Shown piece after piece: positions 1,318 to 63,902 of a DNA stretch of 64,000 bases. A program made the position numbers and the translations under genes. The first letter of the stretch is position 1; every line of letters starts with the position of its first letter. The notes below the pieces were generated by a model. The model was not told the DNA's origin and ran no database searches. It saw only the letters and a program-made list of their open reading frames with translations. The stretch spans positions 36,387,308 through 36,451,307 of the forward strand of contig NC_069002.1 in assembly GCF_001194135.2 (NCBI RefSeq), read 5' to 3'. The DNA is from Octopus bimaculoides (taxonomy: Eukaryota).

Positions 1318-1605
1318 TTATATTTATATTTATATTTATATATTTATATACATAGACGTTAACAAATTCAAGAAAGTACACTTAGTAACCGTTAAAAGAA
1401 CAGAAGACTATGACTTGTGGTATTTGTTTCGGTTTTCATGTTTTGAGTTCAAGTCCCGTGAGATTCTTTTTTCTATCGACGTCGATAAGATAGATACCAG
1501 TATAGTTTAATCCTCTTTCCCTACAAATTCCTTGCCTTCTCCCTGAATGAGAAACCATAATTTAATAATATTTCTTTTATTTCCTAATATATTCTGTATT
1601 TACAG

Positions 1606-1768
1606 TGACAGGATCAAGAGAGATGGTGCTACATGTTCCCTACGGCCTTGTGCACATGCTCCGATAGAGAACTGCTGCAAAGGTCACAATTGTATATGTT
1701 ATGTGGTGCCCGGGGGCACTCGTTGCGTGTGTGTTGCCCCTGAGGTTGATAACGCTATACTGCAAACT
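1606..1768 (+). CDS. KN1: mature-peptide exon of a secreted 8-Cys knottin (agatoxin-like) precursor; signal and propeptide exons not seen (before the window or in a gap)
   Basis: Acceptor ttctgtatttacag|t, phase 2. Translates (S)DRIKR-DGATCSLRPCAHAPIENCCKGHNCICYVVPGGTRCVCVAPEVDNAILQT, followed by donor-like act|gtaagc. Framework C-C-CC-CxC-CxC after a KR site. Confidence 0.85.
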
Positions 1769-3001
1769 GTAAGCGCTTTTCTCGTTTTCCTTGTAAATTT
1801 TAATCTTATTGACGTTCTGTTCCTGTGAATCTTGTGGATAAATTGCTTACGCCAGATTGTTTTTCATGCAAGTAGAAAATCAATGAGACCACGAAGACAA
1901 TGAATTTGATGTTTTAGGTAAAGAGCATTTAGAACTATAATGCACAAATTATCCAAAGGAGCCAGACAAACAGCAAGCACAAAAATACACTCAACTACAA
2001 GAACATCAACTAGTGCTGCTGCTGTTGCTGCATGCTACTACAACTACAACAACAAAATGAAAAACTACTACTACTACTACTTTTTCAATTTTGATACTAA
2101 CTCAGTTATTAAATCCTATAACAAAAGAGAATTATGAACGAACATCAAGAATAAAATGGTAAAAGATGAATTTGTCTAACTACCATGAATTAATACAACG
2201 ATTTTATACATAATATATTAATCCGTCAAATCTTAATGAAATCCCAATTAAATAAATTCATTAAGCAATGACGAATTCTCCGTGCTTTGTTCTTCGCTGT
2301 TGCGTTCGTTTTTAACTTGTGGTGATAGTTGTTAATATTTTACATTGCAGTGTCACATTATGGTTTCAATAAAAAAAACAGTCATGGCTGAGTTGGCAGT
2401 TGATGACAGACGATACGGTTGAATTACGACCACTTCCAACGCTCTTTTTACAGACATCAAATGTATAAGCTCCCGCAGTCCACACTGTCCATCCACTCTT
2501 CAGATGATTACACTTGATTTGCTGATGATTTTACAGTAATTTCTTGCAAATGGAGCGACCACACAGTCTTCCGCATTTTCTACATCTAGGTTGCAATACT
2601 GAAGAAAAATGTCAGATAATTACGTGTATATATATATATATATATATATAAATAATTTAGATTCAAGGTGAATATGGTACTTAAGTTTAGGCACCAGAAT
2701 TAACTATGGTATTATCCATACAATTTCAAAATAAGGTGATTAAAATCAAAATAAGCAACAAGGATATGCAAAGTTAATGCAGTACGATCGTTTCATGCGA
2801 CTCCATTTATTTAAGCAATGTGAACATTACATCAAATTAAGATATTGAAATTTAATAAAATTTCATTTCAACAGAAGGACATATTTTTAGAACTANNNNN
2901 NNNNNNNNNNNNNNNNNNNNNNNNNNNNNNNNNNNNNNNNNNNNNNNNNNNNNNNNNNNNNNNNNNNNNNNNNNNNNNNNNNNNNNNNNNNNNNNNNNNN
3001 N

Positions 3002-7421: not shown

Positions 7422-8170
7422 AGAGATGCAGATATGTAGTACTTACCTATAACTCACTGCACTCAAACTTACATAAACTCCTGTCTGTTGATGCACTAGA
7501 GCAACATCTGAAAGAGATATTAAAATACATCTGAAAGAATTAGATATCCATTTGCCCATGCATCACTCAACAGATAATTCATTGAATACAGGATAATGTA
7601 TTTATAATAACCCCATTTGAAACAAAATGCAGGATCATGACGACTGGAACTCGTATTTCCTCATTCAGGCAGTTAATATGGCTCCTCACTGCAGTGATGG
7701 ATATTTGTAATGCATAAAGGAGAAGGAAGGACAAGAAAACAAGTAAAACCCTCACCTTATGCATATTTGGAATATATAATATAACGAGGCTCTACTATTA
7801 CTATTAAATAAGATTCAACGCTCTATATCAAAGGCTCACAGTGAACTGCTTACCAATAGGAGCTCACAGTTTTTTAAATTTATAACAGTGGAGTCAGTTC
7901 ACCTTTAGTCACGAGGGAGTGGTCGGACTCCTTCCACAACATGTAGATAAATAGAGAATTATTTATTTGAAAGCTGTAATTACATATAAACGGGGTACAT
8001 CCGAAAGACCGTTGAGGTAACGTTATTCATTTTTTTTTCTGACTCCCTTTTCTCCCACTACATATCTGATGACTATAAAGTAAAAAATATTTCCAATTAT
8101 ACTTACTTCGTTTACCGGAGAAGCTGTATGAAATGAATGCACAAAAGAATAAGACACTGATGTTTTTCAT
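5970..8170 (-). CDS. KN2: 8-Cys knottin precursor (signal exon 8170-8107, propeptide exon 7507-7447, mature exon 6138-5970)
   Basis: ag|gtgcgtgATG, MKNISVLFFCAFISYSFSGKR a|gtaagt; ttcag|at..NVALVHQQTGVYVSLSAVSY ag|gtaagt; tttacag|t DRIKR-RGRCTKGPCNGPRPRLRRPCCAGYICECENRKCYCSSQNRIHVATNGIVQT|gtaatt. Phases 1 and 2 join in frame. The middle exon is the least certain because it has an internal gtaagt. The C-terminal end is uncertain. Confidence 0.82.
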
Positions 8171-22407: not shown

Positions 22408-25249
<2,842 letters not shown>

Positions 25250-28200
25250 ATTTCTTTACTTTCTGCTTTTTCCTTGTAAAGTAGATCCGCCTGGTCTGGG
25301 TGTTGCGATAATCATAATCCAAAGTAATCCAAATCAGCAAAAAATAGCAATTCAACCGCGTTTCGACATCATATAAAACTATAGACACATAAAAGTTGCT
25401 AAAACATATCAACGTTCATTGTACAATTCGTTTGTAGAAAATGCGTTATACGAAGTGTTTATGACTTGCAGTTCTTTGTTGCATGTCACGTTATTTAGAA
25501 GGGATTAGTGTTGCTATATGAACAAGAGGAAGCAAAACAGTTGTTATGCAATATTTGGAGACAAGTGAGATGTAAACAGCATCAGTTGAAATTTGTCGAA
25601 TTTTTTCCCAAACCTAAAAATACAGAGTAAAGTAAAACAGCTTGCTAATTGTTTAAGGTTTCAGATTACAGCATATAACATGAGGTTATAGGGGAAAAAA
25701 CGGAGACGAATCTGGTATTACTTGAACAATAATAAATTTATCACAAAAGAGTTCAATCTGTGTCAGTTCATTTCTTGAATAATTAAGAACTTTTGGCGTT
25801 TGCAATAATTCCTCACCGGTTTGATCTGAATTAAATACGTATGTCGTCAAATATATGCTTCCCCCACTCCAAAAACTAGAAGATTACGATAGGAACGGCA
25901 TATAAGGATCACAAATCAACTACAGACAACATATAAGTCCAATGACTCCCCACACACACAACCTGATGCACATGAACCATGAACCTTATACCACGGACTA
26001 ACGCTACTCTATATAGCGTAACCTCTGGACCACCTAGATAAGATGTGCATACTCATAATCAATACAACTCTACCTTATAAAATATGTCATCCATATTGTC
26101 GAATGCCATCAAGACAATTCTATGTGCAGCCCTTGAAATTCATTTTCTTTATATATTATATTGTATTGTGATTATTGTCTGTTTACGCAATCGCGCCAGC
26201 AAGCCTGTCAACTTCCAGGTTTTTATACAATATCTATTAACAATGGCGGACTGGCCTACTTGCCAGCTTTGCAAGTAGGCCCCTGCACCATTAGAATCCA
26301 TATATGGGGACCCATGCTCTCAAATTTGATAATTTTTTATTCAGTCCTGGAAGAATGCATTATTTCGGCTTGGCTGTGTTTGTAGACAGTTGAAAAGGAT
26401 ACTTTTAACAAAACAAAGAAAAAAAACCTTCACATTTTTTATGTTTTATTGCATAAAATTTTAGACACTTTAGAGACGACAGCTTGCGCTAAAAAAGGCA
26501 ATAAATTTAATTTCCTTTGATTTAATGTTATGTGAAAACAAGCGGACAATTACAAACGCGTGTGTACGTGTATACATGCGTATGTGTACGCACGCCCGGG
26601 TGTACTGTATAATTGGCCAGTACAGGGGTTGTAACTGTAATTGTCGTGATTCTTGTTGGTGGATAGCAGATGGAATCTACAAAGCTGACTTTTCATTAAG
26701 CATTTTATCAATTGTGGTTGAATTAAGGAGTCTCAGAGGTTAAGCCTGGGTCAGTTGTTGTTGCAGTTGCAAAGGATTTGAAGAGAAAACACGTTGTTGT
26801 TGCCGTGGTGGTGGTCAGAAGAACGGAAATAAGAATTAAGAGATTTTATTCCCACCAGTCACAAAATTATTATCGAGTTTGTGAATTTGCGAAAAAGGTA
26901 AGAAAAAATTTCCATCATAAGTATTTTGAGATTACAATTTGAAATTTTCCCAAAAATGATATTCAGAAAATCTTTTTTAGCTGAGAAGATTCACAGAATA
27001 ATTTGTTTCTCTTTGAGCAAATATATATATAATTCAGTATAAACTGTTGGTTAAATCGTTTTTATTCAACCGACATTATTGTAAGATCACTCAACGAAGT
27101 ATACCATTAAGGCCAGTGTACTACGGTGTTTAACAATTTAATTTCAATAATGGAGTTTCGGATCGGAACACCCCATGTCGGATTTTCTCCGTTTGACGGT
27201 GATTTTTCCAATTTCTTTTTCACAACGATCTAATTTTTTCCTCACTCCCTCCTTTCTCCTCCTTGCTGCCATCCGGACCGATTTTGGCTCTTTTTTTTTT
27301 TTTTTTTTTTGGTAGTACGCACTTAAAAACGATCGGAGAAGCTTTTACGGTTTTAAAAAAATCATATTTTCACAAGAAAAGGTGTGTGATTTAAACGAGA
27401 TTTAGCAGTTGTTTCTAGCACATCCAAAAATCCCCACTTCAAAATTTCAAATAGCAAATAAATACTGTGACAAAGTAAAATTAAAGTGTTNNNNNNNNNN
27501 NNNNNNNNNNNNNNNNNNNNNNNNNNNNNNNNNNNNNNNNNNNNNNNNNNNNNNNNNNNNNNNNNNNNNNNNNNNNNNNNNNNNNNNNNNNNNNNNNNNN
27601 NNNNNNNNNNNNNNNNNNNNNNNNNNNNNNNNNNNNNNNNNNNNNNNNNNNNNNNNNNNNNNNNNNNNNNNNNNNNNNNNNNNNNNNNNNNNNNNNNNNN
27701 NNNNNNNNNNNNNNNNNNNNNNNNNNNNNNNNNNNNNNNNNNNNNNNNNNNNNNNNNNNNNNNNNNNNNNNNNNNNNNNNNNNNNNNNNNNNNNNNNNNN
27801 NNNNNNNNNNNNNNNNNNNNNNNNNNNNNNNNNNNNNNNNNNNNNNNNNNNNNNNNNNNNNNNNNNNNNNNNNNNNNNNNNNNNNNNNNNNNNNNNNNNN
27901 NNNNNNNNNNNNNNNNNNNNNNNNNNNNNNNNNNNNNNNNNNNNNNNNNNNNNNNNNNNNNNNNNNNNNNNNNNNNNNNNNNNNNNNNNNNNNNNNNNNN
28001 NNNNNNNNNNNNNNNNNNNNNNNNNNNNNNNNNNNNNNNNNNNNNNNNNNNNNNNNNNNNNNNNNNNNNNNNNNNNNNNNNNNNNNNNNNNNNNNNNNNN
28101 NNNNNNNNNNNNNNNNNNNNNNNNNNNNNNNNNNNNNNNNNNNNNNNNNNNNNNNNNNNNNNNNNNNNNNNNNNNNNNNNNNNNNNNNNNNNNNNNNNNN

Positions 28201-30249: not shown

Positions 30250-32247
30250 TATGCAGTTATTGCGCTGCTCGAATCTTTACAATGGCAGTTCGTCCATAAA
30301 CCTCCACATACACAAACTTGACCTCTACAGCATAATTCAAGGGGACTATTACATGGCAATCTTTTGCATATGTTGTCCCTCTTATATCTGCTTCTTCTGT
30401 AAACAGAGAAAATAATTAGAAATGTTAGCAATCTAAAGACACCAGGTATGTTGTAACTGTACTATAGACACATATTTTATATCCGAAACCTCTAAACTGC
30501 TATTGTTCCCATGAAACGATTTTATAGTTACTTCGATTCTACTTGGATTGTGTTAACATTGTAGTGTGTTTACAATCCTGCTTCTGTCGCTGTCGCAACA
30601 GAAGCGAGACTTTCAAAAGACGAATGCTAATCATTAGGAGCATGCAACATCAACTATATAACATATGTGGTGCACCTTGTCAACCACCACTAAGTCCGGT
30701 CTGTTATGTTCTAGCATCTGATTTGTTTGGATTGGGAAATCCCAGAGGATCTTGCAAGTCTCTGACTGCCCCACTCTCTGCGATTCGCGCTCAAACCACG
30801 TCTTGCTTCTCTCCAGGCCAACATGGCAAAGAACGGCAGCAGCTTCCCAACATGTCGTGTATGTCAACAACAAAATGAAACCATTGATCATGTTGACTCC
30901 CTGTGCAGTCTTCTTATGCCTACTGAGTATCTCAACAGGCATGACAGAGCTGCACAATATATGCACTGGGTAATTTGCAAAAACCTGGACCTGCCCTATG
31001 ATATAAAAAAAAAACCTGATGTGAACACAAACCACCTCCAGTGATTGAAAAGGATCACATCGCACTCCTCTAGAACTTCATCATTCAAACTGACAGGAAG
31101 ACAGATGCAAATAGGTCAGACATAATATTGAAAGACTTCAGACAAAAGTCATGCCTCCTCATTGATATAACTGTCCCAATCGATATAAACGTATCTGTCA
31201 AAACCTACCAAAAACTGAGCAAATATAGAGATCTTGAAATAGAAATTTCTCTATCAGTGTGTATTGGCATATCTCAGAGTATGGTTGTTTTCCCATTTTC
31301 TGTGACCTTTTCTAGCGTGTACCTATACCATTATTATTATTATTGTTATTTATTCAAGTCACTGCCTGGAATTGAACTCGGAATCTTGGGGTTAGTAGCC
31401 CGCGCCCTTAACCATTACGATATATAGTCCATGGGAAGTCTATATAACTTGTGTCAGTTAACTAATAATGTTGTTGTTTTTTTATCTGTGGTTGGGGTTT
31501 TACAGCCTTATGGCCTCCTTTCAAAATCTGTTTGTCAGATAGATTACTTCGACATTTTATTCGTGTATTAATTTGATAAAAATAAATTTTAGATATATTC
31601 TCTGTAGAAAATACCTTTGTTTAACATTTAGACAAATATTTTTTCCCCTAATCCAGACAATATTTCAGATAGTTACTCTATTTTCTGATTTTATTTTTGT
31701 TACACAAAGCACGAGACACTCTTTACAAAATAAGCCTAACACAAATAAATCAGTTAACAAAAGCATTATAACAATTATTTCACTTTTACTGATGCCATTC
31801 TCAAACAATTGTCAATATATAATTCTTACCTTCCATCCAAACGGTCATAATCTGTTTCTGACTTGGCATCGGACATACTGCGATCTGAATATGATACACG
31901 AACACAAGAATAACACAAGAATAACACGGGCCTCATAAATATAGTATGGAAGATAGAAGAGCCATGAAAATTTGATGAGAATAAGCAATCTCTCATCCTT
32001 TGAAAACATAAAAAACAACGACTCTCCCCACGTCTCTCTCCTTTTCTCTCTCACTCCTTTCACCACTTCTAGAAAACATAAAAAACAACGACTCTTCCCT
32101 CATCCCCTCTCTCTCTCTTTCCTTTTCTCTCTCACTAGCTCTAGAATTACTATGAAGTGATGGTAGTGGGGAATATTTACCTTGCTTCTGCGACGAGGTG
32201 CTTGAAACGAGTATGCCAATGCAGAGAAGTGCAAGAGTCTTTTTCAT
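30250..32247 (-). CDS. KN4: 8-Cys knottin precursor (signal exon 32247-32181, propeptide exon 31884-31830, mature exon from 30396; 3' end uncertain)
   Basis: ag|ttgcgtgATG MKKTLALLCIGILVSSTSSQKQ g|gtaaat; ttcag|(D)RSMSDAKSETDYDRLDG ag|gtaaga; tttacag|(R)RSRYKR-DNICKRLPCNSPLELCCRGQVCVCGGLWTNCHCKDSSSAITAY. Confidence 0.88.
30560..30795 (-). mobile_element. R4/Dong-like REL endonuclease fragment
   Basis: CKILWDFPIQTNQMLEHNRPDLVVVDKVHHICYIVDVAC (PD..D motif). Confidence 0.75.
30800..31260 (+). mobile_element. R4/Dong-like CCHC zinc knuckle + REL endonuclease fragment
   Basis: CRVCQQQNETIDHVDSLC...EYLNRHD...MHWVIC and SCLLIDITVPIDINVSVKTYQKLSKYRDLEIEI. Confidence 0.8.
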
Positions 32248-34600: not shown

Positions 34601-34954
34601 ACAATTATAGAAAGTGAACACAACGTCATCCCAAAAAAGACCATGCCCCCGATTCCTGAGAATTCCCTATTGATTCAGCGTATATATATATCTACAATCA
34701 ACGGCATACTTCTCTAGGTGACTAAGCATCTGCATGATAGTCGTGACATGTCAAATGCTCCGGCAGCAAAAGTATGCTGCTAAACAAATAAAATCAGTAA
34801 GGAATAAAATGAAACTAAGCAAAACTTCTAAAATTTAACGTAAAAACATTCAGCCTTGTGACGTAAATTCCAAGAAGAGACGCTTTGTTTCTTTGTTAGA
34901 GTCTTGCTTCTTTAGTAGCTTTTATTATTGCCATTTTATATCAACAGGTGCATG

Positions 34955-36731
34955 ATGAAACATAATTTTATCCTCTGTTTGTACTTCTGTGTACTCATTC
35001 CATTCGTGTTCTCATATTTTCAAGGTAAGTACTCATTGTTCCTTATTACTTCATAGTGAATGGGGACAGAGTAAGTGGCAAAGAGATTATTTCATGGATT
35101 GGGAATGTTTTTTCTATCCTTGTGTCATCAAATTCCCTTCTCTTCTCTTGTTTCACGTGATTCTTCCTTTCAGCGCTAGTTTCTTTCCGTTTATCATCTC
35201 TTATCAACCCACCTTGAAGAATTGTAGCCGAATGAGTTGACCCCAGTGCTTCTTTTTAAGGCCTAGGAATTATTTCATGGGTCTCTTTTGAAGAACCTCT
35301 AAGTTACAAGGACGTCGTCGCACTTCCCAGCTACTGATCCTCTGCAAATATCTAAAGAGGAACATCCACCGGTCTTGTTGCCCGACTTGTAGAGGACAGT
35401 GAGCGCCTGACGACATTCTAAGGGCCAGGCGCCCAGTCTCGGCCTATCCTTTACCCAGGACCGCAGCTCCGTCAAGGAGACGAGCTGCGGAAAGGCGTGT
35501 CTCACAAACAGAGCCCACACACCTAGTAATCGCTGCAGGTGGCGCAACCTGAGTGCGTGTCTGCGCATTAAAATCTATGGCAAGCCAAAGCCGCCACGCA
35601 AAAGAAGTTGACAGCAGACCAATCGCCTGACCATTGGAACGAGTCCTTTCCACAAGAAAATAAACAGGATACGCTCCAGTCTAATCAAACAGTAACTGGG
35701 GCAAGGCACAACGGTCAGACGATAAATAATGACAGTTTCTCTCGGTTTCTGTCAACTAAATCTACTCACAAGGCTTTGGACTGTCCAATGTTATTGTAGA
35801 AGATACCTGCCAAAGGAGCGCCGTAGTGGCTCTAAACCCGAAACCGTTTAAGGGAAGCAAACTACACTACTCCTCCCCATCCCCAGTACGTTTACAAAAG
35901 ATGTGTGTGAGGGGTGAAGCTGCAAGACTAAATGGGTTTATTTTGACAAGCATGGTGGTATACTGGAAGACTGCACGTTTGATTTCTGTGAAATCAATCA
36001 TCCTATTTCCAGGAAGGAAAATATAAATTCCAGTCTTTACTGACCTCTTTTATTCTTGTACTTGTTTCAGTCATTTGACTGTGGCCATGCTGGAGCACCG
36101 CCTTTAGTCGAGAAAATCGACCCCAGGACTTATTCTTTGTAAGCCTAGTACTTATTCTATCGGCCTCTTTTTGCCGAACTGCTAAGTTACGGGGACGTAA
36201 ACACACCAGCATCGGTTGTCAAGCGATGTTGGATGGACAAACACAGGCACACATACACACACACACACACACATACACATATATATATACGACGGGCTTC
36301 TTTCAGTTTCCGTCTACCAAATCCACTCACAAGGCTTTGGTCGGCCCGAGGCTATAGTAGAAGACACTTGCNNNNNNNNNNCTACCAAATCCACTCACAA
36401 GGCTTTGGTCGGCCCGAGGCTATAGTAGAAGACACTTGCCCAAGGTGCCACGCAGTGGGACTGAACCCGGAACCACGTGGTTCGTAAGCAAGCTACTTCC
36501 CACACAGCCACTGCTACGCCTATCCTGTGAATTTTTCAAACGTAGTATAGGTATAATTTCACCGTCTACTATTTATTTAAATATCCAGTTACTATATTTG
36601 TGTAATCGATATGTTTTCTTATAAGAATTTAATCAACTGAAAACTGATTCATCGTAACGATTGACGTAATTTCCAGATCGATATATGCCTGAGGTTTTTT
36701 TAAAAAGAGGGCTTAAAGGTTTCGTAAAAAG
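34955..36731 (+). CDS. KN5: signal exon (34955-35024) and propeptide exon (36677-36731) of an 8-Cys knottin precursor, upstream of three tandem mature exons
   Basis: caacag|gtgcatgATG MKHNFILCLYFCVLIPFVFSYFQ g|gtaagt; ttccag|(D)RYMPEVFLKRGLKGFVK ag|gtaaga. The phase-2 end joins in frame to all three downstream exons and creates KR|S at the junction. Confidence 0.85.
36045..36510 (-). mobile_element. Near full-length microsatellite-containing tRNA-SINE in KN5 intron 1
   Basis: tRNA-like head (gtggctgtgtgggaagtagcttgcttacgaaccacgtggttccgggttcagtccc), body, (ca)n and tail. A ~50-bp segment is duplicated across the 10-N gap. Confidence 0.85.
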
Positions 36732-37515
36732 GTAAGAATTATATATTTTATCTTTTATCTTGTTTCAGTTATTAAATTGCGGTCATGCTGGGGCACTACC
36801 TTGAGGAATTTTGGCCGCACTTGACCTTTGTACTAATTTTCCATTTTTCAAAAGCCTGATACATATTTACTCGGTTTTTTTTTTTTTTTTTTTTTTTTNN
36901 NNNNNNNNNNNNNNNNNNNNNNNNNNNNNNNNNNNNNNNNNNNNNNNNNNNNNNNNNNNNNNNNNNNNNNNNNNNNNNNNNNNNNNNNNNNNNNNNNNNN
37001 NNNNNNNNNNNNNNNNNNNNNNNNNNNNNNNNNNNNNNNNNNNNNNNNNNNNNNNNNNNNNNNNNNNNNNNNNNNNNNNNNNNNNNNNNNNNNNNNNNNN
37101 NNNNNNNNNNNNNNNNNNNNNNNNNNNNNNNNNNNNNNNNNNNNNNNNNNNNNNNNNNNNNNNNNNNNNNNNNNNNNNNNNNNNNNNNNNNNNNNNNNNN
37201 NNNNNNNNNNNNNNNNNNNNNNNNNNNNNNNNNNNNNNNNNNNNNNNNNNNNNNNNNNNNNNNNNNNNNNNNNNNNNNNNNNNNNNNNNNNNNNNNNNNN
37301 NNNNNNNNNNNNNNNNNNNNNNNNNNNNNNNNNNNNNNNNNNNNNNNNNNNNNNNNNNNNNNNNNNNNNNNNNNNNNNNNNNNNNNNNNNNNNNNNNNNN
37401 NNNNNNNNNNNNNNNNNNNNNNNNNNNNNNNNNNNNNNNNNNNNNNNNNNNNNNNNNNNNNNNNNNNNNNNNNNNNNNNNNNNNNNNNNNNNNNNNNNNN
37501 NNNNNNNNNNNNNNN

Positions 37516-37760
37516 CGAACCCTGCTGTCCTCTTTCACCACAACTTTCTCTCACTCTTACTTCCTGTTTCTGTTGTGCCTGTAATCCAAAGGGGCCAGCC
37601 TTGTCACACTGTGTCACGCTGAATATCCCCGAGAACTACGTTAAGGATACACGTGTCTGTGGAGTGCTCAGCCACTTGCACGTTAATTTCACGAGCAGGC
37701 TGTTCCGTTGATCGGATCAACTGGAACCCTCGACGTCGTAAGCGACGGAGTGCCAACAAT
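37516..37760 (+). mobile_element. Third octopus SINE family (OK/OR1-like), 5' end in gap
   Basis: Nearly identical body to 57472-57840, ending gtgccaacaa. Confidence 0.8.
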
Positions 37761-37784
37761 GTATGTATGTATGTTTTGTGTGTG

Positions 37785-37816
<32 letters not shown>

Positions 37817-38357
37817 TGTACGTATGTATGTATGTACGTACGTACAGGCTTACTTTAATTTCTGACAACCAAATCCACTCTCAAGGCTGTGGTTGGCCCG
37901 AGGCTATAGTAGAATGCACTTCGAGACTGAACCTTGAACCATGTTGTCAGGAAACGAACTTCTTACTACACAGCCACGCCTGCTCCTATACTGATAACTG
38001 ATTCAGCTGCGCTATTATTATTAGTATTGTTATTATTAGACTCGTTAGCACACAGGACATATTATTAAACATAACTAGTCCTGGATCATTTTGATACCAC
38101 CTCGTACTATGTGGTGAGAATCTTTGGAATTTGAATCTCGAATAATTTTTGCTTAGTATCAGGTTGTTACTTCTTGCTAGTTCAGTAACACTTCTATGGC
38201 CTATACACTTCTGCTAACGTGCTGTAACATTTGACTGTATGTATCTACAAACATATTTATAGGAACAAAAATAATTTAATCAAGCACTGTATTAACACAA
38301 CGTAATTACGAAGTTCTTTCTTTTATATATCTTCTTTGCTTTTATCTACATTTCCAG

Positions 38358-38496
38358 AAGCATATGGCCTACATGCGGAGCATTTGCTGAGAAATGCCAA
38401 CATAAGCGGAGTAGGTTATATAATCCATGTTGTAGGCAATATGATTGTACATGTAGGATCGTCTGGAAGAAATGCCTGTGCATGTATCCTAAATAG
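38358..38496 (+). CDS. KN5a mature-peptide exon
   Basis: atttccag|a then SIWPTCGAFAEKCQHKRSRLYNPCCRQYDCTCRIVWKKCLCMYPK-stop (tag 38494-38496). 8 Cys intact. Confidence 0.88.
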
Positions 38497-39122
38497 TATG
38501 TCCATTGATTAAAGTATCTTCCATGAATGTCATGCTGTTTAAAATTGTTAACCTCATTATATGAGACAAAGGAAAATAAAAATACTTTTTATGCGAAATT
38601 GTTATTTGTTCAACGCTAACATGTCCAATATATATTTTACGTTGCTGGAAATTTAGAGCCAAGTGAAGCAGTTTTTTGGCTTCTTAGACTTCGTGTACAT
38701 TTTTGCAGTTATTATGTGACTACATGTAACGATAAACTATAGAAAAGCATCAAGAGATAACTTGGTTTTCTATTTATAACAAAAAAAAACAAAATCAAGC
38801 GTCACAGGGCTCCGTTATTTGCTTCATAATGAACTCCTTCGCATTTGTTAAGAAGTTGGGTATTAATTATGAAATCCTTTGCTTTCATTAAAAATAGTTT
38901 TGTCAATAAATCTATTTTAAAAAACTACGTTTTTCAGTTTCAAGTACATTTTCAAACCCCAAAACAAATTCTCACCCACCCAAACACACACACACTGTAA
39001 AAGTTCGGTGAAAATTCATATTTATAGGCACAAAAATAATTTAATCAAGCACTGTATTAACACAACGTAATTGCGAAGGTCTTTCTTTTATATATCTTCT
39101 TTGCTTTTATCTACATTTCTAG

Positions 39123-39285
39123 AAGCATATGGCCTACATGCGGGGGATTTGGTGAGAGATGCAACCCTGTGCGGAGAAGATTATATGCTCCATGTTGTAG
39201 GCAATATGATTGTGCATGTAGGATCGCCTGGGAGAGATGCATGTGCATGTATCCTTCTTTTAGTAATAGTATGTCCATTAATTAA
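39123..39285 (+). CDS. KN5b mature-peptide exon
   Basis: atttctag|a then SIWPTCGGFGERCNPVRRRLYAPCCRQYDCACRIAWERCMCMYPSFSNSMSIN-stop. 8 Cys intact. Confidence 0.88.
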
Positions 39286-39886
39286 AGTATCTTCCATGAA
39301 TGTCATGCTGTTTAAAATTGGTAACCTCATTATATGAGACAAAGGAAAATAAAAATACTTTTTATGTGAAATTTTTATTTGTTCAACGCTGACATGTCCA
39401 ATATATATTTTACGTTGCTGGAAATTTAGAGCCAAGTGAAGCAGTTTTATGGCTTCTTAGACTTCGTGTACATTTTTGCAGTTATTATGTGACTACATGT
39501 AACGATAAACTATAGAAAAGCATCAAGAGATAACTTGGTTTTCTATTTATAACAAAAAAAACAAAATCAAGCGTCACAGGGCTCCGTTATTTGCTTCATA
39601 ATGAACTCCTTCGCATTTGTTAAGAAGTTGGGTATTAATTATGAAATCCTTTGCTTTCATTTAAAATAGTTCTGTCAATAAATCTATTTTAAAAAACTAC
39701 ACGTTTTTCAGTTTCAGGTACATTTTCAAACCCCAAAACAAATTCTCACCCACCCAAACACACACACACTGTAAATGTTCGGTGAAAATTCAGTCATACT
39801 GAGTTTTCAAAATAATTGAAGAGAGAGAAAGAAAAAAAAAGGGGGTGGTTATAATTTCTGTCTCGGTGCGTGTTATTCATTTTTTC

Positions 39887-39949
39887 AATTTCAGTCTCTG
39901 TGCACTGGTCTCTTCACCGCGAAGAGACCAGTGCACAGAGACTGAAATT
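39887..39949. repeat. Perfect 29-bp inverted repeat with 5-nt loop
   Basis: aatttcagtctctgtgcactggtctcttc-accgc-gaagagaccagtgcacagagactgaaatt. Confidence 0.95.
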
Positions 39950-39950
39950 A

Positions 39951-40068
39951 GCCTATACACTTCTATGGCCTATACACTTCTATGGCCTATACACTTCTAT
40001 GGCCTATACACTTCTATGGCCTATACACTTCTATGGCCTATACACTTCTATGGCCTATACACTTCTGC
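39951..40068 (+). repeat. 17-bp minisatellite (cctatacacttctatgg), ~7 units
   Basis: Identical head-to-tail units with no spacers. About 1.5 units occur at the paralogous site 38189-38212. Confidence 0.95.
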
Positions 40069-40211
40069 TGACGTGCTGTAACATTTGAATGTATGTATCT
40101 ACAAACATATTTATAGGAACAAAAATAATTTAATCAAGCACTGCATTTACACAACGTAATTGCGAAGTTCTTTCTTTTATATATCTCCTTTGCTATTATC
40201 TACATTTCCAG

Positions 40212-40368
40212 AAGCACAAGGTCTAAATGCAGAGGATTTGGTGAGAGATGCAATCCTATGCGGAGAAGATTATCTGCTCCATGTTGTAAGGAATATGATT
40301 GTATATGTAGGAACGCCTGGCAGAGATGCATGTGCGTGAATTCTACTTTGAGTAAAAGTGACACAGCG
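40212..40368 (+). CDS. KN5c mature-peptide exon (3' end uncertain; read-through stop at 40437)
   Basis: atttccag|a then STRSKCRGFGERCNPMRRRLSAPCCKEYDCICRNAWQRCMCVNSTLSKSDTA. 8 Cys intact. Confidence 0.85.
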
Positions 40369-40719
40369 GTTACATACTTACATAATTATATATTTATGTA
40401 TCAGTGTATTTCTTTATTTTCCGCTTTGACCCTGTAATACAGACATCTCTGGTCATAACTATTGTTGTCATTATTATTATTATTATTATTATTGAGGGAG
40501 AGAGCCGTGCATGCCATCAAAGTGGCATTGGGGTAAAATATACGAAGCCCATTATACCCATCATGACTACCCGTCTGTACAGGAATACATTAGTAAATAA
40601 ACAGCAGGTCAAAGGAATGGCACAAAAATATCTTTATGGCAAAGCATCGTACAAATATTTGTGCATGAACATTCTTTGGATATTGATTTGTAGAAAATGT
40701 ATTCTGTGCAGGTGGCACG

Positions 40720-40935
40720 TAAAATACACCATTTGAGCGTGGCCGTCGCCAGTACCTCTTGACTACACTCTCGGAGTGGTTGGCGTTAGGAAGGGCATCC
40801 AAATGCAGAAACTCTGCCAAATCAGGTTGGAGCCTGGTGTCGCCTCCTGGTCCACCAGTCCTCAGTCAAATCGTCCAACTCATGCTAGCTTGGAAAGCAG
40901 ACGTTAAACGACGACGATGATGATGATGATGACTC
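40720..40935 (-). mobile_element. RTE-type 3' tail element with (cat)n end
   Basis: gagtggttggcgttaggaagggcatcca...tcagtcaaatcgtccaac...gacgttaaacgacgatgatgatg. Further copies at 46320-46500(-) and 50915-51160(+). Confidence 0.8.
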
Positions 40936-42029
40936 TAAAAGTTCCATCTTTGAGTGTCATGCAATTTATATTGGATAATATCGTTAAATGACAATAGAAA
41001 ATAAACGTAGGTATACTCTGAGCGTAATACTGTGTAAAGTTACATCAAGAATTTAATCATGTTCAATATATAATCGCACAAGACTCATAGAATATTCAAA
41101 GAGAAGATTCAAAACAGGAAAGAATAGTCAGAAAATATTGTGCGTATTACAGTGTAAAATAAATTGATATTGAAGCTAAAGATGTTCCACGGAAATAAAT
41201 ATAAGAATATAAGAGATTTCGGGATCGATACACTAAGTACCAGTTGAACAATGGAGTTCATGTAACCAACTTAGCTCCTTCCCCGAAATTGCTGGCCTTG
41301 TGCCAAAATTTGAAACCAATATTTTACATCACTCTTGTACGAAGTTATATCCGTCGTGTGCCAAGGGAGATCATTCTTAACCAACACTGCCATGAGTTGT
41401 TTCTTGTTCAGAAAGGGAGTTATTTCAAGAACGACAAGTGACGGTAGGCTTTCTGAACTTTAGTATGTCGCCAAAGTTGCTTCCCTTATATACACTGTCT
41501 TTTTTTTTTTTAAGAGTAGCGCGAAGCTAGCAAGAAGGCGTTTATATAGGTTACGTCTGTTACATTATATTAGGCAGATAGTGAGATAAAGAAACCTAAA
41601 AACCTAAAATCTTCTTAAATAATGAGTAAAAGACCTTATGTCAAATAAAGGAATATATAAGAAAATAAACCAGATATCGTTATCAGAAATACATGCATAG
41701 GAGTTTATATCGATTACTATATCAGTCGAGAGATTATCATAAAATAATCCCGGTAAATTCCAGAACGTAAATGTCACAAAGAAACTATTATAATAAACGC
41801 CTTACAATGATTGAAAAATATTCAGTGAAATACATGACTAAATCCAGGAAGCTTATACAACACAGAAGTTGTCACCACTAGGACTTGCACATATTATATA
41901 AGGCGCATTTCATGTAATAACACGTAAAAAATATATGCAAAAAACTGCGTATACGAAACCAAGGTACACAAAACCGTGCTCGGATGCGAAATGAAATCAC
42001 GAAATAACGAATGTAAGACTAAAAATAAT

Positions 42030-43270
42030 TCTAATACTTGGCAGGCACATGTCCCGAAATATTGAGAGATGGAGTAAGAGGGTTACATCGCCTCCAGTCC
42101 TTGAATGGTACTATTTCTTATCGACCCCAAAAGGATGAAAGTCAAAGTTTAATTAATGATAATCTAAGGCGGCGAGCTGGCAGAATCGTTAGTACGCCGG
42201 GCAAAATGCTTAATTGCATTTCGTAATTCTTTACGTTCTGAGTTCAAATTCCGCAGAGGTCGACTTTGCCTTTCATCCTTTCGGGGTCGACAAATTAAGT
42301 ACCAGTTGCATACTGGGGACGATCTAATCGAATGGTGCCCCCTCCCCAAAAATTTCGGACCTTGTGCCTAGAGTAGAAAAGAATTAATGCTAATCCTTTC
42401 TACTATTGGCACAAGGCCTGGAATTTGAGGTGGGAAGGGTTAGTCGATGACATCGAGCCCAGTGCTCAACTGGTAGTGATTTTATCGACCTCGAAAGGAG
42501 GAAAGGGTAAGTCTACCTCGGCGGAATTTGAATTCAGGACGCAAAAGAAGGACGAAATGCCACNNNNNNNNNNNNNNNNNNNNNNNNNNNNNNNNNNNNN
42601 NNNNNNNNNNNNNNNNNNNNNNNNCCTTACTACTTTAGGCCAAGGCCTGAAATTTGCGGGGAAGAGGTAAGTCTATTACATCGAACCCAGTGCGTAACTG
42701 GTACTTATTTAATCTACCTCGGAAAGATGAAAGGCAAAGTCGACCTCGGTGGAATTTGAACTCAGAACGAAGCGGCAGACGAAATGCCGCTAAGCATTTC
42801 GTCCCGCATACCGGCTCACCACCCTTGTCCTGTCTACAATAGACACAAGGCCTGAAATTTGGGGGTCAATCGATTACATCGACCCCAGTGCGTAACTGGT
42901 ACTTAATTTATCGACCCCAGAAAAGATGAAAGGCAAAGTCGACCTCGGCGAAATTTGATCTCAGAACGTAACGACGGGCGAATTACGAGCTAAGCTCTTC
43001 GTCCAGTGTGCTAACGGTTCTGCCAGCTCGCCGTCTTAGTTTAAATACGAATAACAAATAATCATATGTGATTATAAAGCAGCGAGCTGGTGAAATCCTT
43101 ACAGAACCAGATAAAACTGACGCCTTTCTTCCGATTTTACATTTTGAGTTCAAATTCCGCAGAAGTTGCCTTTTGGGGCCGACGAAATAAGTACTAGTTG
43201 AGCACTGATGTTGATGTCACCGACTTTCCCAGCTCCCACAAAGCCGCTGATCTTGGGCCAAAATTTGAAA
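42030..43270. mobile_element. Cluster of about six CORE-type SINE copies in both orientations
   Basis: Repeated gaaaggcaaagtcgacctcggcggaatttga / ggcgagctggcagaatcgttag motifs at ~42040, 42170, 42400, 42625, 42840 and 43080. Confidence 0.85.
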
Positions 43271-48269: not shown

Positions 48270-49860
48270 ATCGGTGGGCTGTTCCCCCACAACAAGATGC
48301 TCTGAGAAACATTTCATGCACACAACAACGTAGAATTCTGTAATTCTGTCAAATCCATACGTTACGTATGCAAATACATTACCAAAGGATCAACAGATTT
48401 TACAAATGATGAAGTGACTCTTTTCGAAACTAGACGCTACATATCCACTAATGAAGCCATACGGAGAACCTTAGGATTCCTAATTCATGAATGATACCCT
48501 CCTATGATTCATCTCAGCGTTCATTTGGAAAATAGTCAGTGAATTTACTTTACAGAAGACAAGCTCATTCAAGAAGATGCTGCCCCGCCAAAGACCACTC
48601 TCACGGTCTTCTTTCATCTATGCAAAGTCGACTCCTTCGCAAAGTCTATTTTGTACGCTGAAGTGCCACATCATTATACATGGAATCAATCATCTTCCCA
48701 GTGGCAACGACGAAAACAAGCCTGGCCTACGCAGCTGGATCCAGCCGTGTACAAAGACGACACAATCGAATGCGTCTACACAGTTCAACCCCTGAACTCT
48801 GAATGCTTCCATCTGCAGCTTTTATTTCATGTCATTAAGGGACCAACCTCTTTCGACAACCTTCGCACAGTGGACGGCCATTTATGAGGAACTGTCAAAG
48901 ATGCCTGCTCCAAACAGGGACTTTTGGATACAGATGATCAATATGATAATGCACTCGAAGAGGCCTCTCTGTGTCATTCTCCACACAAGCTTCGACACCT
49001 TTCTGCAACAGAGTTAGTTTTCTGCAACCTGACAGATGCACATTCACTTTGGAATAAATACAAAGACTCAATGCACCATGACATTTTGCTGCAGACTCAC
49101 CAAATCACAGGTAGCGTTGGCACTCCCACTACTCCTGCCATTTACAACAGAGAGCTTCTTCTCTTAGAAGACTTGGTTATGGCAATTGGAGGTCAACGAT
49201 TGGACGCTTATTCTCTCAACACTCCAGACAGAAATGAAGACGCCTGTCCCAGTCACCTCATTCTCAGAGAAACATCCGACAACATCCACAAACTCAAACA
49301 GTACATTGCTGACAACGAGCCCCTTCTGAATTCTGATCAAGCTGACGAATACAATTTTGTCCTCGGAAACATCTACACACAAACACTATCCAACAGAATT
49401 TCTCAACTCCTAAGATCCTCCAGGACTCCCGTCCCACGAACTTCACTTGAAAAATCGGTTGCCCGTCATCCTCCTATGCAATCTAAACACACCTACACTA
49501 TGCAATGGAACTCGCCTTGTGGTCAAACAAATGATGGACCACGTCATTGAAGCCCAAATTATCACGGGACACGTCAAAACCGACACCGTTTTCATTCTGA
49601 AAATTCCTCTAACCCCAACAGACTGCTCCTACCCTATGCAGAGACTTCAGTTCCCTTTGAAACTCAGCTTCGCCATGACAATTAACAAAGCACAAGATCA
49701 GTCGCTGAAAGTTGTCGGATTCGACCATCAAACATCGTGCTTTTCACATGGACAGTTCTTCATCGGTTGTTCCAGAGTTGGCCATCTAGACAACTTATTT
49801 ACCTATGCTCTTGAAAGAAAAACCAAAAATGTCGTCTACGAAGCAGTCCTACAGTAGTTA
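48270..49860 (+). mobile_element. Helitron Rep/helicase pseudogene, internally deleted
   Basis: HNNVEFCNSVKSIRYVCKYITKG; YAEVPHHYTW; FHLQLLFHVIKGPTSFDNLRTVDG; LCNGTRLVV; QFPLKLSFAMTINKAQDQSL; FSHGQ...SRV (Pif1-like motifs V/VI). Multiple stops and frameshifts. Confidence 0.9.
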
Positions 49861-50914
49861 TTCCTCTACTGCAATCTTCACATCAACGCCAAACTGTAGC
49901 CGTTAGCAATCAGACATCCTGCAAGCATTTCATTGGTATTTCGCTTCATTTCCCTGATTGCTGTTAATAGCACCTTATCTTCAATGACCCTTCTTACTTC
50001 ATGCACGCAGTTCGCTCATAAGCATGCTCTGACATTTATTTATGTAAGCACTAGCTCTTTTGTATAAAACAGCCCTAAAATGATATCTGGTTATACTGTG
50101 GGTTTTTTTTACATCTAGAACATTTAACATGGTTCGAATCCTGCGGATCTGAAACACATTCACCTAATGACCAGATTGAAACATGAGTAGACACTTTTTA
50201 TACTTTTTTCTGTTAATTTATGTTCCTTTTAATTTTATTTGTATTAAATGGTTTGCTATGTTTTTATCGTGATACAAATAAGTATGAACTATATATTTTT
50301 TCTCTATTTTCCTCTATAAATACAACTATATATATACACACACAATGGGTTTCTTTCAGTTTCTGTCAACCAAATCTGCTCACAAGGTTTTGGTCGGTCC
50401 AAGGCTATAGCAAAAGACACTTGCCCAAGGGACCACACAGTGAAGTTGGGCCCGAAACCATGTGGTCGAGAAGCAAGCTTCTTACCACACAGCCATGCCT
50501 GCACTTATATAAAGAACATAAGTATCTTGAAAGAAAAATTTGGCATTGAAGTATGAGGAATAGTGTGTAAGAGAGAAGCATGACCAAATATAGGAATATA
50601 ACGTACATGAGGAATGATTGTTGGATAAAAAAATACTGTCAAATAATGCAAGTAGAAGAGGCCTGTGGATGAAAAAGACCAAAGAAGACTTAGGAAGGAG
50701 CAGTGAGGATGTTCAGCCTCACAAAGGAAGAAAAAATGGTGAAATACTGAAACCAGTGGAGAGACAATGTGTTGGCTTTGCTGGCATTAATTGTACTGGA
50801 ATGTTACGGTTATGCTGTAAAAATGATGAAGATAATGATGACGTAAAAATTTTAATTTTCTTTACATCAAATATACTTTTCTTTTTTGGTGCCATCAGAC
50901 CAACAACTTCATTA

Positions 50915-62400: not shown

Positions 62401-63902
62401 ATGCTGAACTGGTCTAAAGACATGATGGGAAGAAATGATGAGTGTTGGATGACAAATTGCTATGGGTCGACAGAGGACAACAGCCATGGCAGAGGAAGAT
62501 TGTGATAATGGAAAAAAGTGGTAAAATTAGTGCTGAAGATGTTGAGTCTCACTGATAAGATGGTGCAGGAGTAAGATAATTAGATGACATTCTGTGCTGC
62601 AAGCCAGACCAACCCATACCAGCAGAGAAAAATGAACACAAGAACAAGAATTACTGGTACTGATATGGCATGGGTATATTCTTTTATTCTTTAGTCAAAC
62701 AAATCACCCACAAGACTTATTCTCTGTAAGCCTGGTACTTATTTTATCAGAGACTTTTGCCGAACCACTAAGTTATATGGATATAAACACACCAACTTCG
62801 GTTGTCAAGTGATGGAGGAGGGATAACACAGACACACAAATACATATATATATGTACAATGGGTTTCTTTCAGTCTCCATCTACCAAATCCACTCACAAG
62901 GCTTTGGTCAGCCTGCAGCTATAGTAGAAGACACTTGCCAAGGTACCACACAGTGGGACTGAACCCAGAACCATGTGGTTACAGGTTTTATAAACATATA
63001 TCTATTTACAACTTACACCTAATTGACACTAGAGTAATTATTACAATGCTATCAACTTTGTAACATTATGTAAATGGGTTGAGCCATTCACAATCTTGAT
63101 TACATTTCAAAAACTAACTTTCTGTTCTGCTCAGGTATCTTTACAGAAAGATATAAGCAAATTTTGAGTTGTAAATATGACAAAATTAGTCTGTTTAATC
63201 CTACTTTGAAGCCACCAAAAACCATGTGATACAACATATGTCATGTGATACAACATATGTCATGTGATACAACATATGTCATGTGATACAACATATGTTA
63301 TGTGATACAACACATGTTATGTGATACAACATATGTCATGTGATACAACATATGTTATGTGATACAACATATGCTATGTGGTACAGCAAGTTGACAGAAT
63401 CGGTAGAGCGCCGGGTGAAATGCTTAGCGGTATTTTATCTGTCGTTACATTCTGAGTTCAAATTCCGCCGAGGTCGACTTTGCTTTTCATCCTTTCAGGG
63501 TCGATAAATTAAGTACCAGTTACGTACTGGGGTCGATGTAATCGACTTAATCCCTTTGTCTGTCCTTGTTTGTCCCCTCTATGTTTAGCCCCTTGCGGGC
63601 AATAAAGAAATAAGAAACAAATTTGGCAGGTTTTCTCAGTTGCTGTTTGTATCAGAGGTGAGGAAAGTGATGAGGCTCTATGAGAAACATCCTATTGATG
63701 CCAGTAAGGAAAAGAAGAGATGTATGATGATGATGATGGCAACGTTGATGACGATGGTAGTGTGAGAGTGTCTGTGGACGCACATGCTAGCATGCACATG
63801 AGAGAAAAAAAACAACACTGAGTATTTATCAACTTACAAATACAATAGGAAGAAAAGAATCCGGAAAAGTACTTCTGCCCCAAAGCTCTCCAAAATCTTC
63901 AT
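54726..63902 (-). CDS. PLPP5: Phospholipid phosphatase 4/5 (PPAPDC1-type PAP2 diacylglycerol pyrophosphate phosphatase), 280 aa, 7 coding exons
   Basis: Exons 63902-63838, 60811-60706, 60216-60129, 59543-59480, 57197-57073, 55661-55491, 54949-54726 total 843 nt and join in frame. PAP2 motifs K(IIFG)RPRPDF, PSGHSS and [13 protein letters not shown] are present, plus the PLPP4/5-typical [22 protein letters not shown]4 vs PLPP5 assignment cannot be made by eye; it is probably a co-ortholog. Confidence 0.95.
56215..56485 (+). mobile_element. RTE-clade LINE RT C-terminal fragment, antisense in PLPP intron 5
   Basis: [67 protein letters not shown]. Confidence 0.88.
57472..57840 (+). mobile_element. 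Full-length tRNA-derived SINE (OK/OR1-like)
   Basis: A/B-box-like head ggcgcaatggcccaatggttagggcagcgg...ttcgatttcc. Body shared with 37516-37760. Confidence 0.85.
60291..60510. mobile_element. Mariner-type MITE, TA-flanked
   Basis: TIRs tgatggggtactaaaaagttcctggcttt / aaagccaggaacttttcattaccccctca, with TA on both sides. Confidence 0.85.
62690..62985 (-). mobile_element. Microsatellite-containing SINE in PLPP intron 1
   Basis: Same family as 36045-36510. Confidence 0.8.
63223..63382 (+). repeat. 19-bp minisatellite (catgtgatacaacatatgt), ~8 units
   Basis: Direct head-to-tail repeats with few variants. Confidence 0.95.
63384..63618 (+). mobile_element. Full-length CORE-type SINE (OR2-like)
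   Basis: tRNA-like head, core gaggtcgactttgcttttcatcctttcagggtcgataaattaagtacc, tail aataaagaaataagaaac. Confidence 0.88.

Follow-up and report, generated by a model that had tools for sequence, protein, structure and literature searches.

A knottin gene of Octopus bimaculoides with one leader and three tandem peptide exons suggestive of alternative last-exon use

We examined a 64,000-nt stretch of the Octopus bimaculoides genome (NCBI RefSeq assembly GCF_001194135.2, contig NC_069002.1, positions 36,387,308 to 36,451,307, forward strand), hereafter the window, and found in it a gene, KN5 (34952-40437, +), in which a single leader, made of a signal exon and a propeptide exon, is followed by three paralogous exons, A, B and C, each encoding an eight-cysteine knottin-type mature peptide, or payload. 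The window lies on the chromosome record CM046622.1 (GCA_001194135.2), in which the record position equals the window position + 36,387,307. We read KN5 as a family member with the ancestral three-exon plan, whose peptide exon has been copied twice and whose copies would be used as alternative last exons, and we give this reading a probability of about 0.5. In this plan the signal exon is separated by a phase-1 intron from a short propeptide exon, and a phase-2 intron, placed within the Arg codon of a Lys-Arg cleavage site, separates the latter from the peptide exon. Under this proposal the main product would be that of the proximal exon A, a tail-less soluble peptide evolving fast under selection, whereas B and C would be used upon skipping of the acceptor or poly(A) site of A. 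Because there is only one leader, a secreted B or C peptide requires the splicing of the donor at 36731 to that exon.

KN5 exon 1 (34952- or 34955-35024, +) encodes the signal peptide MMKHNFILCLYFCVLIPFVFSYFQ and ends at the phase-1 donor G/GTAAGT, and it matches the signal exons of four window paralogues in length, phase and the terminal ...[KF]Q/G. Intron 1 (35025-36676, +, phase 1) is rich in short interspersed nuclear elements (SINEs) and includes a 10-N gap at 36372-36381. Exon 2 (36677-36731, +, 55 nt) encodes the propeptide DRYMPEVFLKRGLKGFVK plus AG and ends as AAA AG/GTAAGA in phase 2; the middle exons of the paralogues are 52-61 nt long, with the same phases. Intron 2 (36732-38357, +, phase 2) includes a 617-N gap at 36899-37515. 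An initial annotation of this DNA had described a single leader for KN5 and spacers free of signal or propeptide exons, and this description is borne out: the gap-free interval 37516-42563 contains no Met-initiated hydrophobic exon with a donor, tblastn of six family signal exons and six propeptide exons against it gave no match, and the A/B/C spacers were leaderless by three independent scans. The KN5 propeptide (36677-36731) is itself basic and has a second dibasic site, FLKR/GLKGFVKR, from which an extra short peptide, GLKGFV, could come off, whereas acidic propeptides are encoded by the paralogues at 23771, 31884 and 45605 and a mostly hydrophobic, uncharged one by that at 7507.

Payload exon A (38358-38496, +) encodes (R)SIWPTCGAFAEKCQHKRSRLYNPCCRQYDCTCRIVWKKCLCMYPK and is tail-less, ending in ...CMYPK before its stop. 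Payload exon B (39123-39285, +) encodes (R)SIWPTCGGFGERCNPVRRRLYAPCCRQYDCACRIAWERCMCMYPSFSNSMSIN and ends in ...SMSIN before its stop, with TAG rather than CAG as its acceptor. Payload exon C (40212-40437, +) encodes (R)STRSKCRGFGERCNPMRRRLSAPCCKEYDCICRNAWQRCMCV and then an uncharged, hydrophobic tail of 33 residues, which runs to ...NYIFMYQCISLFSALTL and a stop. The predicted KN5 peptides contain the stretches SIWPTCGAFAEK..., SIWPTCGGFGER... and STRSKCRGFGER.... The acceptors read ...TTTCCAG for A, ...TTTCTAG for B and ...TTTCCAG for C, with 77-82% pyrimidines at -25 to -4. The three exons share one phase, and in each the first A completes the leader's AG to AGA, an Arg codon, so that the junction ...GTA AAA AG/A AGC is read as V K R S. 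The starts, polypyrimidine/AG acceptors and common phase of the three exons, and the proposal that the Lys-Arg cleavage site is formed across the splice junction, are thus as first annotated, and every choice of exon reads ...FVKR/S. The description of all three exons as intact stands for the acceptor, the eight Cys, the stop and an AATAAA, which every copy has, but A and B are truncated relative to C. The eight Cys are preserved in A, B and C as well as in the payload exons of five other loci in the window.

Polyadenylation signals follow each exon, with AATAAA 79, 63 and 159 nt past the stops of A, B and C, respectively. A module of about 95 nt that ends in GGAAAATAAA and contains AATAAA is found 10 nt past the stops of A and B. 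It spans 38506-38600 (+; AATAAA at 38575-38580) after A and is duplicated at 39279-39373 (+; AATAAA at 39348-39353) after B, whereas the candidate signals for C lie within 40596-41005 (+), at 40596-40601 and at 41000-41005, the latter within the conserved module. The module after A is about 71% identical to 40938-41005, which lies 500 nt beyond C, as well as to the 3' untranslated region of a paralogue in a second cluster of the family described below (merged sequence 30725-30820); from these matches it is probably the polyadenylation module of the family. Since each copy has an acceptor, coding sequence, a stop and AATAAA, each is a complete terminal-exon unit. We considered A or B as an internal cassette and rejected it: both have in-frame stops, and splicing from the only donor-like sites that follow (GTATGT) would again lead to a stop or shift the frame. 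Because of these stops and the lack of a usable downstream donor, A and B can only be terminal exons. The predicted products of the three exons are not equivalent, with the 33-residue hydrophobic tail present in C and lost in A and B.

Next, we compared the divergence of the payload exons with that of their flanks. Between A and B, 18 of 130 exon positions differ as against 14 of 627 flanking positions (13.8% versus 2.2%, about 6-fold; Fisher p = 3e-7), and between A and C the counts are 27 of 130 in the exon and 7 of 170 in the intron (exon about 5x intron; Fisher p = 1e-5). The ratios of nonsynonymous to synonymous changes are 16:2 (A-B), 26:1 (A-C) and 15:2 (B-C), with 0 of 24 Cys-codon sites altered. 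Estimates of dN/dS range from 1.8 to 6.8 and are noisy, with 1-2 synonymous changes in each comparison, and the exon-versus-flank contrast was relied on instead. Polarisation with C assigns 13 exon changes to A alone and 3 to B alone; among the former, 12 are nonsynonymous and one is synonymous (AGA to AGG, Arg19). This excess of nonsynonymous exon divergence argues for selection, clearly only on A. It is convincing evidence that A has had a function ever since A and B separated, and current use of B or C is not implied by the divergence. A hypervariable mature peptide within conserved flanks is the pattern that diversifying selection on an expressed peptide would be expected to produce. The same contrast between flank and peptide is observed in the inverted paralogues 1436-1935 (+) and 6308-5818 (-), which are 88.6% identical over the 170 intronic nt that precede the payload, whereas the Cys-rich region of their payloads, at 1606 and 6138, is only 79% identical and has many indels. 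Gene conversion from another paralogue was also considered as the source of the changes in A and was rejected for the stretches covered: neither the window nor the 35.6 kb of the second cluster has a further match to exon A. The donor could lie in another part of the genome.

Upon aligning the payload units, we find a clean tandem duplication of A and B (38252-39018 versus 39017-39792, +) of 766 bp, with 94.5% identity over 777 nt, in which the exon of each unit is preceded by 106 nt of intron and followed by about 520 nt of 3' flank. The relation to C is of a different extent. Upstream of A and C the common intron segment is 170 nt long (38188-38357 and 40042-40211, both +; 95.9% identity), and the exon homology continues to 10 codons after Cys8; homology to C stops at 39270 in B and 40359 in C. 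Protein and DNA comparisons alike show homology between the tail of C and those of the other family members, including a DNA match to the tail of the K25076 locus (25235-25279); C is therefore the terminal exon in its ancestral form, from which A and B derive by truncation and loss of the tail. An older event produced a truncated upstream copy in which the tail was lost while acceptor region, knottin domain and poly(A) module remained, and the younger 766-bp tandem duplication then split this copy into A and B, with C as the ancestral tail-bearing exon. The proposal that the spacers are duplicated flank holds for the A-B spacer, which shares 97.5% identity with the stretch following B, and only in part for the B-C spacer, which also contains unique sequence, a palindrome and a repeat. 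These last two lie at the boundary of units B and C (39887-40066), where a perfect 29-nt inverted repeat with a 5-nt loop (39887-39949) is followed by seven copies of a 17-nt unit, GCCTATACACTTCTATG (39951-40066), which occurs as a single copy upstream of exon A (~38197-38213). Judged from its sequence, this arrangement has the signature of a hairpin plus slippage at a duplication boundary. The tandem of A, B and C behind one leader agrees with the view that duplication here took place at the level of the exon and not of the gene.

When the search was extended to the whole window, six loci of the family were found in 46 kb, with alternating orientation. Besides KN5 they are a locus with a payload exon starting at 1606 (1606-1828, +), whose leader is off the window or in a gap; LOC128250536 (8170-5925, -; payload from 6138, K6140); a locus with its payload from 25048 (22408-25279, +; K25076); LOC128250537 (32247-30126, -; payload from 30396, K30395); and a locus with its payload from 44885 (45872-44615, -; K44863). 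The two LOC genes have proteins in the collections searched, whereas KN5, K25076 and K44863 are apparently unannotated. Four of the five other window payloads have one signal exon and one propeptide exon of 52-61 nt upstream, with the phases of KN5. Our exon-finding method is validated by the gene with its payload from 30396, since its three-exon model equals the NCBI protein XP_052831763 (P0008), which consists of the signal 32247-32181, the propeptide 31884-31830 and the mature exon from 30396, exactly as predicted.

A profile of the eight payload exons, searched against 1.84 billion representative proteins, gave six real matches, all of them 'uncharacterized' proteins of O. bimaculoides. 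Two are genes of the window and four belong to the second cluster, at 29.13 Mb of the same chromosome. The family is largely unannotated, with matches in this search only from O. bimaculoides. The second cluster (CM046622.1:29,125,984-29,161,601), 7 Mb from that of the window, has three genes in the 35.6-kb stretch covered, each with one leader and one payload, and no KN5-like multi-payload gene was found there (3/3 genes single-payload). Two of its genes, in tandem, have identical signal exons (MRRTLALLYIGVLISCASSQKQ) and different propeptides and payloads, and its K25076-like gene has a propeptide exon whose protein is identical to that of the window copy. From their sequences, the second cluster and part of the window cluster appear to be related by segmental duplication. 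In total, the eight other family genes examined (three in the second cluster and, in the window, four complete and one further) each show a single leader and a single payload where both are visible, and KN5 is the sole deviant among nine; the contrast with whole-gene duplication that had been drawn at the outset is well founded.

Every member except A and B of KN5 carries a tail of 28-50 residues after Cys8. The tails (in the window 40338-40437, 25178-25276, 30270-30129, 1736-1825 and 6017-5928, and also in the genes of the second cluster) end uncharged and hydrophobic, with a maximum 15-residue Kyte-Doolittle mean of 1.7-3.2, and the NCBI models include them. In its sequence the tail resembles a glycosylphosphatidylinositol (GPI)-anchor or tail-anchor signal, which would be unusual for a knottin or a CCWamide-like peptide.

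We then examined the relation of the family to known peptides. The CCWamide/agatoxin-like peptide (ALP) family has eight Cys, an aromatic residue between Cys6 and Cys7, and three exons (Thiel et al. 2021, PMC8557429), with a conserved intron between the second and third base of the basic cleavage-site codon (PMC8557429). Supplementary splice patterns of that study show phase 1 followed by phase 2, and in the scorpion U8-agatoxin-like gene the reading is ...YTRK-(phase 2)-RSC... (PMC8557429), to which the ...FVK-(phase 2)-RSI... of KN5 is alike. The split basic codon is also found in K25076, K30395 and K44863, but not in K6140 (AG/T = Ser). The Cys order C, C, CC, C-x-C, C-x-C in the eight octopus exons aligns Cys-for-Cys with 16 published CCWamide/ALP peptides, and a Trp lies between Cys6 and Cys7 in A (CRIVWKKC), B (CRIAWERC), C (CRNAWQRC) and most paralogues. 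An hhalign comparison of the octopus exons with the 16 CCWamide/ALP peptides gave a probability of 95.2% and a score of 42.0, as against 19.8-38.0 for 15 within-loop shuffles in which the Cys columns were kept; because these controls reach such values, most of the score comes from the Cys framework. The Pfam family Toxin_9, which marks several mollusc CCWamides, scored 11.7-17.5 bits against the KN proteins, below its cut-off of 21.3.

There are also differences from the canonical genes. CCWamide/ALP genes have an amidated aromatic C-terminus and other loop lengths, whereas the KN peptides are without a C-terminal aromatic-Gly(-Lys/Arg) amidation signal and mostly carry a hydrophobic tail, into which C and the other paralogues run. 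The canonical octopus CCWamide is a separate gene (P0014, P0015; ...CKCNLWMQNCRCVNKLWGG), and since it is encoded elsewhere, the KN genes are divergent paralogues of CCWamide. Taken on the hhalign result, the exon count, phases and split codon, and the Trp, KN5 would lie in an O. bimaculoides cluster of divergent CCWamide/ALP relatives, and the junction-encoded Lys-Arg is an inherited intron position of the family and not an adaptation of KN5 (PMC8557429). An AlphaFold2 model of A has a mean predicted local distance difference test (pLDDT) score of 72.8 and a C-terminal hairpin (29-33/38-42), and its best matches in the PDB are spider inhibitor cystine knot (ICK) toxins (1kqh, 2roo, 8uwf, 1eit), with template modelling (TM) scores of 0.58-0.73 and non-significant E-values (E >= 0.24).

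The closest parallel to KN5 comes from the same peptide family. In Phoronis psammophila (comp71831_c0 seq7/seq1) and P. ijimai (comp81603_c0 seq7/seq3), two transcripts of a single Trinity component in each species share the same signal and propeptide up to the KR and encode two different CCWamide peptides, and the phoronid seq1 transcript has both payload open reading frames (ORFs) in tandem (PMC8557429). These sequences imply, in a reading that is not the authors' own, tandem alternative payload exons behind one leader. The phoronid gene is like KN5 in its shared leader and alternative eight-Cys peptides, and unlike it in having two payloads instead of three and a canonical aromatic-Gly-Arg amidation signal on both; the transcripts could also come from very recent gene duplicates with identical leaders. 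The ALP gene of decapods has 2-4 splice variants (Veenstra 2016, PMC4888303). In the CNMamide gene of the termite Zootermopsis and of decapods, the last two coding exons are alternative after common first exons and give different mature peptides (PMC4888303). CNMamide is thus like KN5 in its shared leader and alternative terminal peptide exons, and unlike it in being unrelated, non-knottin and limited to two alternatives. In calcitonin/CGRP (CALCA) and in the Lymnaea FMRFamide gene, a common signal-encoding 5' part is likewise spliced to alternative peptide exons, which in those genes are not recent tandem paralogues, unlike those of KN5. Spider ICK toxin genes (Hadronyche Hc1a/Hi1a) have the signal, propeptide and mature peptide on three exons with phase-1 and phase-2 introns; they diversified by whole-gene and intra-exon duplication, the latter giving two-domain toxins, and the authors found no alternative splicing (PMC13172734). 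They resemble KN5 in exon structure and in growth by duplication, supply the best, though non-significant, fold matches of the A model, and differ from it in their whole-gene duplication and the absence of alternative splicing. The kind of system is already known; the KN5 instance is new, within an undescribed, fast-evolving octopus knottin family.

Several observations weigh against the use of alternative last exons in KN5. The strong proximal acceptor and poly(A) site of A would tend to pre-empt B and C, and the acceptor of B has changed from CAG to TAG. The exon excess between B and C (17 of 130 versus 7 of 106 in the intron; p = 0.13) is not significant, the three exon changes of B equal its flank rate, leaving a clear signal of selection for A only, and changes in the C lineage cannot be polarised. 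The duplicates are young, with intron divergence of about 4%, and for this reason intact frames in B and C prove nothing. A precursor of the leader plus A shared three 5-residue words with no protein in a collection of 5.8 billion, none of the 1.84 billion representative proteins contains a KN5 payload, and NCBI has no gene call over 33-42.8 kb of the window and no annotated KN5 product; the missing call is weak evidence, because the paralogue K25076 (25048) is uncalled too. Finally, the leader and the payloads are on different contigs of one scaffold. We take seriously, as having perhaps one chance in three, the explanation that only one payload is used, either A, whose acceptor comes first, or C, which is the ancestral exon; the others would be young, silent by-products of duplication that have not decayed. 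With flanks that differ by just 2-4%, B and C could be intact by chance, and the unaccelerated exon of B, its weakened acceptor, the absence of annotated isoforms and the lack of alternative splicing in spider ICK genes of the same structure (PMC13172734) are all as this explanation would have it. It accounts less well for the divergence of A and C, fivefold that of the intron with all Cys kept, which points to at least two lineages changing faster than neutral after the first duplication, for the retention of acceptor, stop and poly(A) signal in every copy, or for the phoronid gene of the same family with its two tandem payloads. That the whole locus is dead, with no payload expressed, would agree with the lack of a gene model and of a protein in the collections searched, but annotation of this family is patchy anyway, the reading frames, splice sites and Cys are all intact, and a neutral relic would be expected to change at about the flank rate, in contrast to the accelerated, almost purely nonsynonymous change of exon A with its Cys codons spared; we regard a dead locus as very unlikely. 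We consider it likely that the leader is joined to A and expressed. We infer further that more than one payload is used, and give at least two payloads serving as alternative last exons somewhat less than even odds.

The remaining explanation concerns the assembly. The 617-N gap (36899-37515), whose length is an estimate, lies within intron 2 exactly between the leader and all three payloads, bordered by poly-T on the left and a dispersed repeat on the right, and because of it leader and payloads are joined through scaffolding. The gap could hide the real payload or a second leader, the contigs might not be neighbours, or A and B might be misassembled haplotypes. The other gap of KN5 is demonstrably an assembly flaw: the 58 nt before the 10-N gap at 36372-36381 (36314-36371) are repeated exactly after it (36382-36439), and since the same 58 nt stand on both sides, this gap is spurious, an unmerged contig overlap within the SINE of intron 1. 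A second record of the locus, reached via a neighbouring gene, equals window 20126-42869 base for base, gaps included, and belongs to the same assembly (GCA_001194135.2). On the other side, 37516-42563 contains zero N, and the tandem of A, B and C with its junctions therefore lies within one contig; A and B differ at 13.8% of exon and 2.2% of flank positions, and their junction is without N. Continuity across the 617-N gap is favoured by matching order, orientation and phase, intron 2 would have a normal size of about 1.6 kb (0.67-1.4 kb in the paralogues), and exon scans of the window found no other orphan leader or payload in the neighbourhood. We infer that leader and payloads form one transcription unit across this gap, hold the tandem triplication of the payload exon to be very probably real, and find an assembly or scaffolding artefact highly improbable.

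Pairing of the docking/selector type known from Dscam was looked for between 36732-36898 and the sequence upstream of each payload and was rejected, with a longest complementary run of 8 nt as against 7.7 in shuffled sequence. A promoter/terminator scan was disregarded, as it applied a bacterial sigma-70 model that is irrelevant to an octopus gene. Look-ups of an ORF of the window and of isoform X2 of the neighbouring gene gave no match.

Should all three junctions be used, KN5 would generate toxin-like diversity through terminal-exon duplication and splice choice instead of gene duplication, and it would be the second such case among CCWamide/ALP genes, a hint that the conserved phase-2 intron at the cleavage site favours the swapping of payloads. 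A bolder extension, which we think unlikely, is that the choice of terminal exon switches between a membrane-tethered knottin (C, with its end resembling a GPI or tail anchor) and two soluble, rapidly diversifying knottins (A and B), within an octopus-specific, positively selected expansion of CCWamide/ALP; such a switch would be an invertebrate counterpart of the toxin-like modulators lynx1/SLURP, from a single promoter. Regardless of splicing, the mature regions evolve far faster than the introns, a conotoxin-like pattern that is here seen in a cephalopod. Neuroactive or defensive peptides are candidate products of the family, which is also a target for re-annotation.

Finally, we note features of the surrounding sequence. 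The KN introns are packed with copies of a tRNA-like SINE and with abundant microsatellites, and most assembly gaps adjoin such repeats; SINE copies lie at 35735-35845, 36288-36514, 37839-37990, 50320-50498 and 62689-62980. Other false gaps with duplicated flanks, like that in intron 1, may exist, perhaps many across the assembly. Two overlapping ORFs, 49447-49857 (+) and 48924-49550 (+), have a weak match to the Pif1 helicase 2B domain (E 1.5e-4, under the Pfam cut-off) and probably represent a decayed Helitron-like element.

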